Source: Calcarisporiella thermophila CBS 279.70 (taxonomy: Eukaryota > Fungi > Calcarisporiellomycota). Taken from it: a stretch of 64,000 nt of DNA. The DNA is taken from the NCBI RefSeq assembly GCF_041956535.1, contig NW_027192205.1, positions 124,001 through 188,000 of the forward strand, in the 5' to 3' direction. Shown here one piece after another: positions 21,901 to 50,156 of the stretch (position 1 is the first letter of the stretch; each line of letters begins with the position of its first letter). The translations under genes and the position numbers were made by a program. The notes under the pieces are model-generated. The model saw only the letters and a list, made by a program, of their open reading frames with translations. It was not told the origin of the DNA and did not search any database.

Positions 21901-24770
21901 CTAACAAGTGTATTTCCAACCCTCTGGGCTAACCAGCCCCCTTAGTTCTTTCACCCGCCCCATTAGCACCGCACGTTCTTGTGGCGGTAATGGGGGCGCT
22001 TTATTCTCCTTCGCAGGACTTCTTCCCCCTGGCTCCACCTCTATAGTGTCCTCACTTCCCCTCACCTTTTCCGGGTGGAAGCAAAGTGGTTTCCTCCCAT
22101 AAGTCGACACAATGGGCAGGAAATTTCGGTGAACCTTCAGCTCTCTTCCTATTTCCTGCTCTAGTTTGTCATATTCCTCCGTGGCTATGTACATGATTTT
22201 GGTAAGATAGGGTCGTAAGGAATGTAAGAACTGCATCCAGTTGTCGCGGCCCAGCTGACCAATATTCCCAGCAAACTCGCCAATTGGAAACGGCACCGTT
22301 ATGGATTGAATGTCTTCGAGACCTAGCAGACTAAAGTGTAGGTGAATCTTGTTTGCCCAGCTGGGGTCAATATCGCGGGCTCGCATCGCATTATATACTA
22401 GACAATGGGCCTAGAGTGGTTAGAGGAGAAAAAAAAAAGGCAAAAACTTATAAAAATACACTTACACCCATCTGCAAGTTTCCTGAATGCCTTGCCACCC
22501 CGACGAAGATCGTAATCTGTAAAATAAAACAAAATAAAATAAAATGCTCTCAGTTGGTCTCTGTGGCCAGCCCTCGAGCACAGTAGATCCCGTGTCAAGC
22601 TTACCCGCTTCGACAATCTCCAAATAGCCTCCAGGCTTCAGGATCCTCAGAGCTTCTTGAATGACGCTTGGCCATTCACTCTTCACCAGGCCAAAATGCA
22701 TACACCTTTGGAACACTACATCAAAGGTATTATCCGCAAATGGAAGAGCTTGGGCCACATTTCCGAGCATAAAGCTGCAGTTTTCTGGCATAATATGCTG
22801 CGGGAACATGGGACTAGCATCGATGCCGATAAAGCGGCTATTGGGGTACTCGGTGGCCATCTCCATGCACCATGTACCAGGACCGCATCTACCAAGTTAA
22901 TAATGGAGGTAAGCTTCCTAGATAGAGCGGAAAGAAGAATCGTCCTGAATATAGACCCAATGTCCACCACCATGGCTCCCTCCTCTAAAATTCCATGAAC
23001 AGGTGCAAGGAAATTATTATCAGCAAATAGGTAGCTATGGGATAATATACATACGAAGGGGGGGGGGGGGGAGGAAGCAAAGGAGAGGGGGTGAGCATTC
23101 GAATGTTTTCAAAGTAAAGGCCATTGTGCGTGGATAAATTACCGAAAAGAATAGTGTTGTATAATAAGGCGATCTATCTCCCCCTGGTCATTAGGCAGAA
23201 TGTAGTGTACACCTATTTGTATTCTCACAGATGAGCGGATCAAGCTGGACATTCATGGGAAAGTGGGGCTAACTCTACCTGGTTCATCGAGGAACCGCCG
23301 CCCCTCCAACCATTTGTATCGCACCTGGTCTGAAGCAGGGGCTTGTGCCTGGTTTTCACCCAACTTGTGCGAAGCTTCGCCCACCTCCAGCCCAGGGTTG
23401 GCGATGGCCCGAAGCTGCATTCCTGCAGTTTCGTCCCACTCCTCCTCCTCATTTATCCTCTCCCTCCTCACCTCAAAGTTGGAGCCATGTTGCAGCGAGA
23501 CGAATTCCTCGCCCAGGTCCTTGCTCGGGAGGTCGGCCGATTTCATCCACCACCGCGAATCCAGCCCCGTCCGAGACTCGCCGCCTCCGGCGGCGCCGGT
23601 GCTCTCCATTTTCCCATCGGTCCTGGTGCCCCTGCCGGACGCCCACCGATTCTGCATTAGCGCCGTGTTTCCAAGCGCTGACGCGACGGCGGGGTTGAGG
23701 AGGAACACGATCAGATTCAGGATGCCCTGGATTCCGGTGGTGATGGCCACCACCTTGAACGTTTGGGAGTAGATGGCGAAGTCCACGCTGTTCGTGGCCT
23801 GCAGCCACCCCAGGACCGAGGACGCCGGCTGGCAAATGATCAGCACCAGCGGATAGAGCGAGATTCGCAGCACATGGAAAATAAGCCGCCGCTCTTGGAA
23901 CCGCGCCTCGGGGCGGATGATGTGCCGGTTTTTTTTGAGGTCGATGAGGTCGCGCAGCACGCGCACCATCACCGTGATAATGATCGCGATGGAGTACGCA
24001 ATAGCAAGGCACATCCACAGGTTATTGGCCAGGATATTGAACAGGAACTCCGAGCCCATGCCCCAGTTGGTATAGAAGCGGTGCTATAGAGAAAGAGAGC
24101 GTGAGTTTTGGCTCTTCGCCCACCATAGGTGGGGGAGAGGCAGGCAGCCCTTGGAGTCGGGCCAGAACCGACCTGCTTCGTGTCCCAGTACACGTCCCCG
24201 ATGACCAGAGCGGGGAAGGGGATAATGACGGAGAGGGCGGTGGATATGGGGAAATACCACCGCTGGAACTTGAGCATGTCGCCGCGCCGGTGCAGGAAGG
24301 AGAGGTGCAGGTCGAACGAGATGGCGGTGGTTAGGAAGGCGAACCTATCCAAGGGGAGAGCGCATTAGCTAAGGAGGGGGGGGGGCCTAACACAAACATT
24401 ATTCAACAAGCTCGAGTGTTTAGATAATAACCAAAGGGGGAAGAAGATGATGGTCCAAAAGAGGAAGCGGCAGAGGATGTGATTCGTCGGGAGCACCTTG
24501 TCCATCAAGCCAAAATTGGTGCGCAGCAGGAAGAAGCCCTGTTTATAGGATGGATGTGAGAACGATAAGGTGCGACGTCACGTTAAACTTTAAGATGTTT
24601 ACGCGATAGAGGAAATCGGCCAAGCCAATCCAGAATGAGAGCTTAAAGGATATTGTGTTGACGACATCGGGCTGAGTCAGTCGAAGCCAGACCACCGTGG
24701 CCATGATGACGCCCCCGCTCACGATGGAGACGATGTTGATGGCCTGCTCTCCTGTGGTCACCTCGACCAT
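21901..24770 (-). CDS. Fusion of a cAMP-receptor/Git3-like 7TM GPCR and a LaeA-like class I SAM methyltransferase, about 743 aa (exons 24770-24603, 24538-24432, 24344-24173, 24083-23279, 23212-23143, 23034-22957, 22888-22605, 22516-22466, 22397-21901)
   Basis: Exons total 2232 nt, all introns GT-AG and frame-preserving. The N half has seven hydrophobic segments with LYPLVLIICQP and QGILNLIVFLLNP. Exon 4 continues without a stop into YKWLEGRRF, spliced to YILPNDQGEIDRL..QH, VDIGCGPGTW, LPFADNTFD and LKPGGYLEIVE. Confidence 0.85.
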
Positions 24771-43838: not shown

Positions 43839-44901
43839 TCACTGTTTCTCATCCTCGCCCCTCCTCCGAAATAAATTGTGCAGTCCGATGGTCCGAACAA
43901 CGGCAGGGTTGAGTAAAAACACCACGAAATTCAACAAGCCTTGCATCCCATTCAGTACCGCTTCGGCTTCAAACATTCGGTAGCCGAGAGGAGAAAAAGC
44001 CATGCCCGTGAAGAAAAGCCAATTGACAACGATGGTCACCGGCTGGCAGATCACCAGCACGACGGGGTAAAGGAGTATACGCAGGACAGACTGGATCAGG
44101 GGTCGATCGTGTACGATGGGACTCCTCACTGAATTCGGGGAGCAGCTCTGTTGAATGATCTTGAGGTCGGATCGGACTCGGACTAGGACCGAGATAATGA
44201 CCACAAAAGAGTAGAGTATGGTGATTCCCAGCCAGAGATCCTGACAAAAGATCTCGAGCATGGAGCCAGTGGGCAAGTCCCAGTTGTAAAGAACCGCGTG
44301 CTATTGAGTTAGAAGAGAATTAGGGCGAAGAAAACATAAAAAGACTTTACAGCAGTTGCCCTCTTGAATTCACCTTCTCTAAATCCCAGTGTAAATTACC
44401 CACAATCAATATTGGGATGGTGATTATCACAGAGCTAATGGTGGAGAGAGGAAAGTACCATACTTGAAATTTAGTAACGTCCGTTCTCCGGTATATGAAT
44501 GTGAGGTGAAGGTCAAAGGCTATGGCGGTGGTAAGAAAAGCAAACCTAAAACAAGACCCTTCCCACAGCGTCAATTTCAAATCTAGGAGCTTGCAGTCAG
44601 GAAGAAAGGTTAGTACTGTCACGTACCAGAGCGGAAATACATAGATAGTCCATAAGATAATGCGTGCCGCCCACACATTAGTTGGAAGGAACGGGTCTAA
44701 TAAATCGTAGGATTTACGGAGGAGGTAGGAGCCTCGATATAGGACATCCACCAGTCCTATCCAGAAACTGAGCCGGAAGGAGATGGTGTTGGCGACTTCG
44801 GGACGAGTGAATCGCAGCCAAACCACCATGGCCATCATGACCCCTGCCCCAACCAATGACAGAATGTTGAGAATGAGAATTGCAGTAGGGACATTGACCA
44901 T
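43839..44901 (-). CDS. Stand-alone cAMP-receptor-like 7TM GPCR, about 302 aa (exons 44901-44627, 44545-44374, 44300-43839)
   Basis: Clear paralog of the N half of 21901-24770: NTISFRLSFWIGLVD, FPLW-FAFLTTAIAFDLHL, LYPVVLVICQP, QGLLNFVVFLLNPAV. Confidence 0.85.
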
Positions 44902-46372
44902 TATAGTGTCATACTTGCACGGGGGGAGACGAATGAAGACAGTGTAGTTTATATTCCCGGAGTAAGCCCAAACCTCTGGAACAAAATTTTCATTTGGTAA
45001 TCGCGATTCTGCACAGAGAGTATCTAACCGAAGTTTCAGTCCTTTTCCCAGTTTGACCGAGATAGATGCTAAGATTTCTTTCACACAACCGTCGAGTAGG
45101 GTTAAATTGAACCCTATTCAAATTGGGCAACAATATTCCACAAAAGCAAATAAGATCACCAGGCGCTTTCCGAGTGGGAAGACAGGAGGGTGAAAGGGGA
45201 AGAAGATAAGTCAAACAAGGAAAAGCCATAAGTAATATCATAGCTTTAGAAATTCCCATGATGATTTGAGCCAAAGCATATGTCCAACTAGCTCACGCTC
45301 TACGCACCCTTTGGGCAAGCAAGTATCGGTCAAATGATGCAATTGCCTTCTGGGTGAGCGCCCTGAGTTTCCTGTCGGCCATGATAGGTACAGAGCGGGC
45401 CGGAACGTTTCTCCTAGTGGATTAGCCGAAACGCTGTCAACGCGTATTGATTAAACTAAGGCACGAGCCGAAGTCGTCTTACAAAATACGGATTGAGTCT
45501 ATGGTCTAGCCCATAGTCCCATTGCTGAAAAAGCGCCATACGGCCACAGTTTGAGATGGCCTTTCGGCACAGAGATCGAAGATTTTGGCCCAAGCTGCTC
45601 CTTAGTATTACAAATTGCCTCTTGAAACCTATCGCTCCGATTAACAAATAGTCGACCTTCTGGCACAGACCCAATCTCCACACAGGTGGGGATATAAATT
45701 AAGAGATATCAGAGGGGATATTGGAGAGTGGTGGAGAAGAGCCAGTTAGGGCACAATAATTTGCCTTCTTAAGTTTCAGTTAAATCTAGGTTGAAAAGCC
45801 GAATGCTAAGTGCGAGACGGTGAGGATTATATATGGGGGATAATCGTTGGCATTTTTCTAGAACTCAGTGGAGGGAATTGGGGGATTATCGGGCGATTGA
45901 ACTCTACATAAGCTGAAATAACAAAGAAACATATTGAGAGAGGTGCTCATTTTCAATTGGCCTTACCAATACACCCTTGATTTATCGCTTTGATCTCACT
46001 CGGCCAGGGTAGACCGAGTAAAAGGAAGGGAAAGTGTGTCCATTGGCCGGCTAAATGGATCAGCTTCATACATTTTTGTTGAGTGTGTGGCGATAAGATA
46101 TGGAGTATAAAGTAGGATCTATTCCCAAAATGATCAGGTGAATCGGAGATAAGTGATCACAGCGCCTATATGCTCGAGACCAAGCAGCTTGCAAGTCTCA
46201 GATTTATGGTTAAAGACGCGAGCGATCAGAAAATTAAACAGTTGAAGGACCATTGCAAATATATATATATATAAATACATGTGAAAGATATCGACACAAA
46301 CCATATCTATATACAGTCAGATAAGGAAAATGGTAACTGTGTACAGACATTTTGAGCACAAGCTGATTTGGA

Positions 46373-47637
46373 TCATGGCTCGACCTTGCTCACAAAACCC
46401 CCACCACTCCACCTTTGAGTCTCGGGCACAAAGAGAGTTTGGGGCAAGCCAGATTTTGCGGTTGGCTCCTGGCCAGTGGCCGAGAGATCGAAGCCTACCA
46501 CCACTCTATTCTTGGGCACGAAGCAGTTGTCCATGACCTCGTGTGACGGCTCTCTTCTTAAGAGAGATATTGCGGAGAAGGCGCGTGCCACTGCGGGGTT
46601 CAGAAGGAATACGCCTAAGTTGAGGATCCCTTGAGCCCCACTCAGAATTGCCTCTGCGTACCAGGCGGAGATTCCTAAGGGAGAGTTGAGCAGCCCCTTG
46701 ATGATCAGCCAGTTCTTCACTATGGTGGGCGGCATGCAGATGGCAAGGACGACGGGATAAAGGAGGACACGCACCACCGAATGGAGCACGTTGTTGTCTT
46801 TTGCCTCGGCCGGCTCGTTTGGATACGACTGACTCTCCGTGAGGATGCGTAGCTCGCTTCTCAGTCGAACCAGAACCCATATGGTGGCGAGGAAGGAGTA
46901 GGCAATGGCGAGGCCCACCCAGATATCCAGACAGAAGAGCTCGATCCATATTTTCTGATCAAGCTCCCAGTCATTGATAAGCCGGTGCTAATACAATGGA
47001 CGGGCGTTAGCGTTAGAAGGAGCGGGGTGGCAATGTGGAAGAGCACCCAAACGCGTTAACTCGCTCGCTCCCCTCGACAACTTACCTCTTCACGATCCCA
47101 CCAGACGTTTCCCACCACGGCGGCTGGAATTGGCAGCACCGCGGCAGCTACAGAGGAGACAGGCAGGTAGAGCCTCTTGAGTCTGGAGCTGTTGCACAGG
47201 CGAAATACGAAGGACAGATGCAGATCAAAGGTCACCGACATGGTGAGGAACGCAAACCTACAGTAAGGAGCAATTTGGAGAAATCCAGGATATGGTTCGT
47301 GAAATTAGTAACGAGACCAATCGCTAAAGTGCCCAGGCTCACAAAGACACGGTGATCGTTACCATAATGGAAACGCGTAGAGAGACCAATATAGCACGCG
47401 GGCAATGTTACCATGTTCACTGACAAATTCGTCCAAGACATCCCACGTCCGCCGCAGAAGGAAGTTTGCACGATAGAAAATGTCCGCGAGCCCTATCCAA
47501 AACGAGAGCTTGAAGGAGAGGGTGTTGGCGATGTTGGGCTGCACATAGCGCAGCCAAAGCACCATACTCATCATGGCTCCTCCACAAACGATGGACGCTA
47601 TGTTCAAGATGAGCACGAGCACAGGCACGAATATCAT
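46373..47637 (-). CDS. Stand-alone cAMP-receptor-like 7TM GPCR, about 353 aa (exons 47637-47363, 47257-47086, 46987-46373)
   Basis: NTLSFKLSFWIGLAD, FDLHLSF, LYPVVLAICMP, QGILNLGVFLLNPAV; same intron positions as the 44 kb paralog; TATA-like TATATA about 210 nt upstream. Confidence 0.85.
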
Positions 47638-50156
47638 GGCTGCAGATGGCTTGCAATGCGGGGCAAGTGAGAGTGTTCCAAGCGTTGTAGGCCGCTAGCG
47701 AGAGCATACTCCAAGAGGAGGTCGAGAGGGTGGAGGAGAGGAGGGAGTAGAAGGTAGGGGCGGGTAGGACAGGTGCTTCACTGGCAAAAAGGAAGGGGAA
47801 AGCCTCTGGGAGTGAGGTGCTGATTTGGGTGGAGGATCTGTCTATATAAACTCGGTGGTTACTGCTCGAAGCTCCCACAAGACTCCCTATTGGTTTCAGG
47901 TGCACAAGCGCTCAACAAGAAGAGTTTCTGTCGAATTCAAACCAAGGGATACAAGGCGTAGAGGATTCGAATGATTGACGAATGCCATGGCTGTGTGTTT
48001 CAGTTTTGTTTAGGGTAACCCAAAACCTAGGTAAATGTTTCTTTAATACAACCTCCACTTTTCCCTTCAGTTGAGCAGTTTTGACCACGTCAATTGCAAG
48101 TAATAAGCTCTCGGACCAGCTCTTTCTCGCAACAGCGCAAGCCGTCATTATCAATCTAAAACACCCCTGTTTTCTCTACCTCGACCATCTTTAAACGTGG
48201 ATCTGGGAGCAAGATACCCACGGGTGAGAGTAGCAACCCCTCTCCCCTCTTCTCCTAAGCCTCCAGCTCCTGCTTATTTTATACGATTAGATGACCATTA
48301 GCTAAACCTAGCATATGAAATGGTCGAGGGGGAGTAGAGCCAGCATCTCAGCGTTGTATTCGGACTATTTTTCTTCTTGGGTGTAACAAAAAAGCATGAA
48401 CCAAGGTTGATTTTCATATGTATTATCCAAGACATTTTGTCTTCATTTAATACTACGTCTGAATGAAATGTATGGTTTGAACTCCACCAGATCTGACTCT
48501 TGAAAATAAAGAGCTCGCTTAGATAAGGCACAGACAGCCTAGGACGACATCGCCAAGAAAGAGGGGGAAGGAATAAAATTAATGCAGTGCTCTCGCCACA
48601 AGGCTGAAGTGCCCAAATCTGCAAGCCTGAAGACTTACTTCCTCAAAAAACAACGGTGAAAAGAAAAATTCTGGACATAATTACCGGCCACCTTGTTTTG
48701 ATTGAGCTGACAAAAAAAAAATTCGAGACATCATCACATTTGGGCCATAAGCGCGACCTTGTCTCTCTTCGAATGAGCGGAGCTCTATTCATATTTGTTT
48801 GGAAAAAATGATACTGTACCACATCCCTGGGATCCCTTTATTGCAAGCTCCTCACCAATTTATGCGTAGAATCCGCAGCTGGTTCCCCTGACCTGGGTCG
48901 CGCTAACGAGAGTGATTAGCTCAGCCCTTGGCTGTTTAGCTGGTTGGACGGGACCGAGAGGAGAGGGAACCAGCCGAGAAAACCTCCTTACCTTTGAAAG
49001 AATCCCAAAGTCATGTCTGATATGAAATGGCTGCGTTAAACGTAGTCGAATAGTAGTACTTCCTGTTGCTTCAGCTCACTATGAGGTTGGGAACCGGTCA
49101 ACGGCATGTTGGACAAGTGTTTCTAGAAAGGAGATCGTGTGATACAGATCCTATTCAAGGAATAAATCGAAATGGTGCTAGTTGGGGAGGAGGATGAGTT
49201 GGAGGGAAGGTTTCACTCTTAGCAGCAAGAATAAGACGGGTGTTCCGAACGCGATACTATTTCAGATATTTTACGCGCAAAATAAGCGATGGGCCCTGAT
49301 TCTGCGTTCTCTTTAGCAAAAACAACGCTCAAAAGCAGCTTGCCGTGAGCTAGACACGAGGCCGAGACACTCCAACAATAGCTTGACCATTGGTTTGGGT
49401 TGGGGCCAGAGCGAGGATTCTTGATTACAGTCATGAAGCACATAAGAGTATGAACGGGCCGGAGGGGTGGGGTGCACGTACAAAAGTGCTCCTGGCGTGT
49501 GAACCTACCCTCGGACCCAGCCTGTGTGTGAAGCTATCAATTTGATTTAATCCGTGTAGCCTAAAATGTAGATGGTGTTTCTCCTCTTTCCAAATAAGGA
49601 GAGTAGTATCTAGTCTGAGAATCATATCTCAGATCCCAACCGACTTTATCTATTGCCGTTGTCGCGGTTCGGCTGAAAATGAGATGGGGTGGCTCCGTTG
49701 GGAAGGAGGGAGAAGAGTAAAGCAAAGGGAGAAAATTATTATATTCTGAATAATGTTTCCAAAATATATGAGAAGTATAACAATAGTATAAGGGGTGAGA
49801 ACGGGAGATAACGGGGGAAACAGATAAGGAAGAGGAGGTAAAAAATAAATTATTGATTGTAATTGCCAACATCAATAAGGAGGAAAAAAAAAAAAGCGAA
49901 ATAAAAAATGCCAAAAAAGATAAAAGGAAAATCAAGAAACTATTAAACAATCTCTTTAAACCCTATTCAGATGAGAATAAAAAGAAATGAAGGGGGGGCC
50001 GAGCGCAGCGAATTAAATGAAGGGGGAGAAATAGAAAAGAAAGGGCTTCCACCTCGAGAGCACACACAATCTAGCTAAATGAAGTGTAGAATATATATAT
50101 ATATATATATATGTTTATATATATTATAGATAATAGATAAGAAAAGCAAAAATGTG

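Follow-up and report, generated by a model that had tools for sequence, protein, structure and literature searches.

[quoted passage not shown] The catalytic types described for bigrams are PIPK, INPP, AC, PDE, TKL and aspartic protease (PMC6033456). The gene that we describe here in Calcarisporiella thermophila has the same layout and, like the bigrams, belongs to a multi-copy family that exists alongside unfused enzymes; domain loss is known among bigrams too (GPRch1). Unlike theirs, its catalytic domain is a SAM methyltransferase, a type absent from those in PMC6033456 and from the main text of PMC12716839 and not a classical G-protein effector, and the arrangement has been found in one fungus.

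The enzyme resembles LaeA and LlmA-J of Aspergillus (PMC3547832, PMC4299510), members of a group of methyltransferases whose substrates are largely unknown (PMC4299510), in its class I fold, in motifs I, post-I, II and III, and in a YxLPND..E.DRL..QH motif before motif I. LaeA, however, is nuclear and soluble, whereas the C. thermophila enzyme has a predicted membrane tether and, to judge by their starts, its stand-alone sisters are likely to be myristoylated; the tether argues against a constitutive nuclear location. In the VapA-VipC-VapB system of Aspergillus nidulans (PMC4299510), a LaeA-like methyltransferase is likewise retained at the plasma membrane and linked to an external signal, but VapA is a separate, non-covalent tether of the FYVE zinc-finger type, while the C. 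thermophila tether would be a GPCR in the same chain. The receptor itself shares the GPCR fold and Dicty_CAR-bearing feature neighbours with the cAMP-receptor-like/Git3-like GPCRs of early-diverging fungi, from which it differs in passing no Pfam GPCR cut-off and in having outside relatives that lack the enzyme. Judged from sequence and structural models, we consider this a real receptor-enzyme fusion, apparently undescribed and so far seen in one species. A preliminary description of the locus had named no earlier GPCR-methyltransferase fusion, and our search of the literature, which covered few subscription papers, found none either.

Receptor and enzyme share one reading frame

Within the window, that is, the whole stretch of 64,000 nucleotides analyzed, the gene occupies positions 24770-21901 of the minus strand. 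It has nine exons (Table 1), its introns are all GT-AG (64-108 nt), and it contains no N. The joined translation of 743 aa is identical to the public model VTP21DRAFT_2653 (P0001), which is named "uncharacterized". The neighbours of the gene, judged from their open reading frames, appear to encode a septin and a NEDD8 E1 subunit. Elsewhere in the window, at 43839-45084 and 46373-47900 on the minus strand, are two stand-alone receptor paralogues (P0006, P0014) whose tails are short and carry no enzyme.

Table 1. Exons and linker of the fusion gene VTP21DRAFT_2653 (coordinates within the window)
Feature	Position	Strand	Content
Exon 1	24603..24770	-	Start codon, TM1, most of TM2; without a signal peptide-like or long extracellular N-terminus
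Exon 2	24432..24538	-	End of TM2, ECL1, first half of TM3
Exon 3	24173..24344	-	End of TM3 with conserved D103-L104, ICL2, TM4, start of ECL2
Exon 4 (junction exon)	23279..24083	-	805 nt; TM5-TM7 (about 24059-23700), NP motif, helix 8, linker, first enzyme motif
Predicted cytosolic linker, residues 294-403	23322..23651	-	Weak similarity to the linkers of other fusions
Exon 5	23143..23212	-	Methyltransferase YxLPND..E.DRL..QH motif
Exon 6	22957..23034	-	Leads up to SAM-binding motif I
Exon 7	22605..22888	-	Methyltransferase core: remaining motif I, post-I, II, III; Methyltransf_25 E 1e-15
Exon 8	22466..22516	-	Methyltransferase
Exon 9	21901..22397	-	End of methyltransferase fold, low-confidence spacer, C-terminal helix 717-734, stop codon

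As the preliminary description had it, TM5-TM7, the linker and the enzyme motif YKWLEGRRF lie in one frame of a single uninterrupted exon (exon 4), which has no stop in this frame versus 8 and 5 in the other two, and five further GT-AG exons complete an intact enzyme with every motif then listed. The linker is indeed roughly 110 aa long, but its supposed richness in Gly and Glu is only mild (14 G and 14 E per 113 aa). The chance of a stop-free linker is about 0.08 at this GC-rich locus alone, and 0.003-0.04 at each of the 10 other loci that have one.

Separate transcripts, early polyadenylation, alternative splicing or a misjoin would each mean that receptor and enzyme are not produced as a single protein. 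Consistent with such a view are a donor-like GTGAG at 23471 in the linker, whose use would shift the frame and yield a receptor without enzyme, the fall in GC3 along the gene from about 0.85 (receptor) to about 0.5 (enzyme), and the presence of four broken fusion copies in the genome. We consider it very improbable, given that no stop occurs 3' of TM7 and no AATAAA-type signal within exon 4, that linker dN/dS is below 1, and that the arrangement is repeated at 12 loci on 7 contigs. A drop in GC3 similar to that of VTP21DRAFT_2653 is seen in the C17 copy, and none in the fusions of the large clade (see below). An assembly misjoin was rejected because the same arrangement recurs on 7 contigs. 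Gene model and structural prediction together show one gene for one predicted membrane protein, with a GPCR domain and, on its cytosolic tail, a methyltransferase joined by the linker of ~110 aa.

The receptor half has a GPCR fold

Residues 1-295 are predicted by AlphaFold (AF2) to form seven helices and a helix 8 in GPCR topology (pLDDT 89.9). All of the top 50 Foldseek matches to this model were GPCRs, and VIA-align, an independent aligner, placed it on GPCRs with Z of 20-22 (up to 22.2) and an rmsd of 3.3 over 260 residues; the matches of both programs span residues 1-294. Its language-model neighbours are Dicty_CAR-bearing clusters at 0.95, the first of them mostly from Zoopagomycota. No Pfam GPCR model (Dicty_CAR, Git3, 7tm_1/2) scored above cut-off on the VTP21DRAFT_2653 receptor, which was left unclassified by Pfam, NCBIfam and PDB sequence searches; GPR_Gpa2_C matched 3 of 22 relatives weakly (best E 0.0015). 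The HMMER check proposed earlier thus succeeded for the enzyme (Methyltransf_25, E 1.7e-17) and failed for the receptor, whose identity as a GPCR rests on structure, since the Git3 and Dicty_CAR models do not match it. By its predicted fold, it is a cAMP-receptor/Git3-like GPCR, and the original proposal of a GPCR fused in frame to a methyltransferase agrees with the seven-TM model, the intact class I enzyme and the single reading frame.

The receptor has kept D52 (the 2.50-like aspartate) and the TM7 NP. Of the class A features, those without a match are the DRY arginine (TM3 has D103 followed by L104), the NPxxY tyrosine and the ECL2 cysteine of the TM3-ECL2 disulphide. From GPCR topology, we infer an extracellular N-terminus and a cytosolic enzyme. 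Relatives of the receptor outside C. thermophila occur in Dimargaris, Tieghemiomyces and Neoconidiobolus, and at 356-423 aa all of them are too short to carry the enzyme. P0023 of Dimargaris xerosporica, with 38% identity, is about as near to the receptor as many C. thermophila paralogues are; an old shared family and a transfer are both candidate readings of this closeness.

The enzyme half is an intact class I methyltransferase

Residues 404-686, which give the Methyltransf_25 match, keep the invariant SAM-binding columns, and their predicted fold is that of a class I SAM methyltransferase: Rossmann-like, with motifs I (DxGxG), post-I, II and III intact. Motif I is interrupted by intron 6. 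The C-terminal helix (717-734) is common to VTP21DRAFT_2653, P0005 and the stand-alone enzyme P0029. The closest predicted structures belong to Methyltransf_23/25 clusters of Mucoromycota and other fungi, and the best PDB match reaches a TM score of 0.79 by target. Solved structures match at 13-20% identity and point to no substrate; among those of known activity, the best are mostly N-, S- and O-methyltransferases of small molecules. The YxLPND..E.DRL..QH ahead of motif I we take as a resemblance to the LaeA-like family. The earlier label "LaeA-like" holds as such a broad family resemblance; the myristoylation-like starts of the stand-alone sister enzymes point to a role at membranes, unlike that of nuclear LaeA.

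The fusion forms a family within one genome

Searches of the C. thermophila genome gave at least 47 receptor matches and at least 36 enzyme matches, with a receptor directly upstream of an enzyme at the 12 loci; this count omits up to three candidates, two with the junction in N runs and one at C1:134168. Two "open frames" of 731 and 1351 aa on C10 were considered as intronless fusions and rejected, the frames being N runs. All 12 fusions have a phase-1 intron at the same codon past the GRRF-type motif, their exons 5-8 are equal in length apart from the absence of a single base in one of the broken copies, and in 11 of them TM7 and the GRRF-type motif lie in one stop-free frame. Eight look intact (read from TM2 onward for most). 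The other four (L019, L022, L025, L028) carry stops, frameshifts or a deletion; they may be pseudogenes or contain sequence errors, which suggests either turnover of the family or faults in the sequence. The public annotation includes at least four full-length fusion models (P0001, P0005, P0017, P0032), and its models P0030 and P0031 are shortened versions of two further fusions. The genome, of 28 Mb, also has about 15 G-alpha loci, about 19 velvet-domain loci and at least 40 members of the family of the fused receptor.

The dN/dS comparison of both halves and linker that had been suggested gave values below 1 throughout for intact pairs of the large clade: 0.08-0.13 (enzyme), 0.16-0.20 (receptor TM5-7) and 0.30-0.45 (linker). 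Judged by these substitution ratios, receptor, linker and enzyme show purifying selection in sister pairs. Pairs with VTP21DRAFT_2653 are mostly saturated in dS, so that selection on this copy rests on its intact frame and motifs. Orthologous fusions in related fungi, which the preliminary description had thought worth seeking, did not appear: word-limited or cluster-limited searches, and a metagenome scan with one short pattern, found no GPCR-methyltransferase fusion outside C. thermophila.

Linkers and the possible coupling of the two halves

The linker of VTP21DRAFT_2653 is 22-27% identical to those of other fusions. It matches the C17 linker (z 3.7), which in turn matches the profile of large-clade linkers (E 3e-4). 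The NP motif of TM7 and the enzyme motif lie 115-127 aa apart in 11 of the 12 fusions. The linker was also compared with the N-terminus of stand-alone P0029, and a correspondence is unsupported (z 0.1-0.4); P0029 has an extra intron there.

These properties bear on direct one-component signalling, where the ligand would move TM5-TM7 and an enzyme docked on the cytosolic face would be activated or shut down with no G protein involved. The same model was proposed for the oomycete bigrams (PMC6033456), and the maintenance of linker length over three receptor lineages and the missing DRY arginine would fit it. Against it stand the length and divergence of the linker, a whole-chain Atlas model with a pTM of 0.52, which suggests no fixed contact between the domains, and the description of direct transfer as unprecedented in PMC6033456. 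Given a linker of ~110 aa that is poorly conserved, we think direct ligand control improbable and do not favour it.

All nine readable linkers of the large clade (L019-L028; C1, C4, C10, C25, C32) contain an RVxF-type motif, about 62-66 aa past the TM7 NP and behind a Ser/Thr cluster, where 4-19% per shuffled linker would be expected by chance. The linkers of VTP21DRAFT_2653 and of the C17 copy have no such motif. Its place after a Ser/Thr-rich stretch suggests docking of a phosphatase (PP1) on large-clade linkers.

A signal could instead trigger cleavage of the linker and free the enzyme for velvet proteins or chromatin, much as a VapA-VipC-VapB system in one chain. In A. nidulans, VapA retains the methyltransferases VapB and VipC (LlmB) at the plasma membrane, and a signal sets them free (PMC4299510); the velvet-domain loci of C. 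thermophila would offer partners. Yet no conserved cleavage site was seen across the fusion linkers compared, and the stand-alone sister enzymes look permanently lipid-anchored; such a release has, to our minds, a low probability.

Origin of the fusion

In the enzyme tree, all 12 fused enzymes and the stand-alone P0029 form one clade (99/99), where P0029 is sister to the C17 fusion (96/93); a clade of fused enzymes only is not rejected (p 0.17). The fused receptors, on the other hand, fall in three places of the receptor tree: that of VTP21DRAFT_2653 adjoins the stand-alone P0002 (99/95), that of the C17 copy sits among other stand-alone receptors, and the large clade also includes stand-alone ones. 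Grouping the fused receptors in a single clade is rejected, also with nested stand-alone ones admitted (p 2e-8 and 4e-5), and is not rejected when the C17 copy is left out (p 0.29), the constrained groups having been picked after inspection of the tree, in the lenient direction. According to these trees, at least two lineages contributed the receptor halves, while the enzyme is of one source across the fusions and the linker probably so. The shared source of enzyme and, probably, linker implies either many losses of an early fusion or a second receptor lineage in which the module was gained or to which it moved.

An MG..S-type start precedes the enzyme in about 8-10 of 14 stand-alone methyltransferase paralogues (a set that includes L017 and L029-L039); in eight it is the first Met of the open frame. 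We take this start to be the N-myristoylation consensus, which two of these eight fit loosely. It was also found in 3 of 8 full-length homologues from other Mucoromycota and Glomeromycota (Rhizopus, Spinellus, Ambispora); our literature search found nothing that links LaeA-like enzymes to myristoylation. L017 (C9:268472), the stand-alone enzyme nearest to the fusions, carries an additional intron within its N-terminal extension and lies in tandem behind the more distant stand-alone L031 (C9:270495). From these starts, we infer that the enzyme family works at membranes. Since most stand-alone sisters have an N-myristoylation-like start, the receptor probably replaced the lipid anchor on an already membrane-bound enzyme.

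Such an ancestry would also suit an enzyme that is constitutive, with the receptor merely positioning it, or with the enzyme methylating, and so inactivating or making, a small molecule or lipid related to the ligand of the receptor. The small-molecule activities among its solved matches favour this, but those matches are distant and reveal no substrate, and attachment to the membrane was already provided by a lipid anchor, which leaves the retention of a whole receptor by purifying selection to be explained in some other way. We regard a constitutive enzyme as rather unlikely.

Discussion

The reading that we prefer, tentatively and at somewhat less than an even chance, is that a receptor working with G proteins controls its tethered methyltransferase indirectly. 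The ancestral enzyme would derive from methyltransferases that were probably N-myristoylated and membrane-attached, with the receptor taking over from the lipid anchor. We think it most likely that the receptor has retained both the binding of an external ligand and its cooperation with G proteins; once activated, it would change, by way of G-protein subunits or linker phosphorylation, the access of the enzyme to a membrane-proximal substrate, resulting in a local methylation output or feedback. We count in favour of indirect control the RVxF motifs of large-clade linkers and the G-alpha loci, and against it the absence of that motif from the VTP21DRAFT_2653 linker, L104 in place of the TM3 DRY arginine, the lack of the ECL2 cysteine, and the occurrence in one species.

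A methyltransferase brings a chemistry that is not usual as the output of a GPCR, the known fusions involving kinases, phosphatases, cyclases, phosphodiesterases and a protease. Because the enzyme is tied to a receptor, the location of its substrate is restricted, which bears on the long-standing question of what LaeA-like methyltransferases act on (PMC4299510). C. thermophila is a heat-loving, early-diverging fungus, and the proteins of a thermophile are suited to purification and cryo-EM. Both halves occur in its genome as fused and as unfused sisters, which makes the family a clear example of domain gain and loss. The boldest possibility, which we think unlikely, is a ligand-gated methyltransferase: a GPCR with methylation as its direct output, in about a dozen receptor-enzyme pairs, the enzyme module having moved between receptor lineages. 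If true, GPCRs would have an output of a new kind. More generally, the fusion could connect sensing at the cell surface with methylation.
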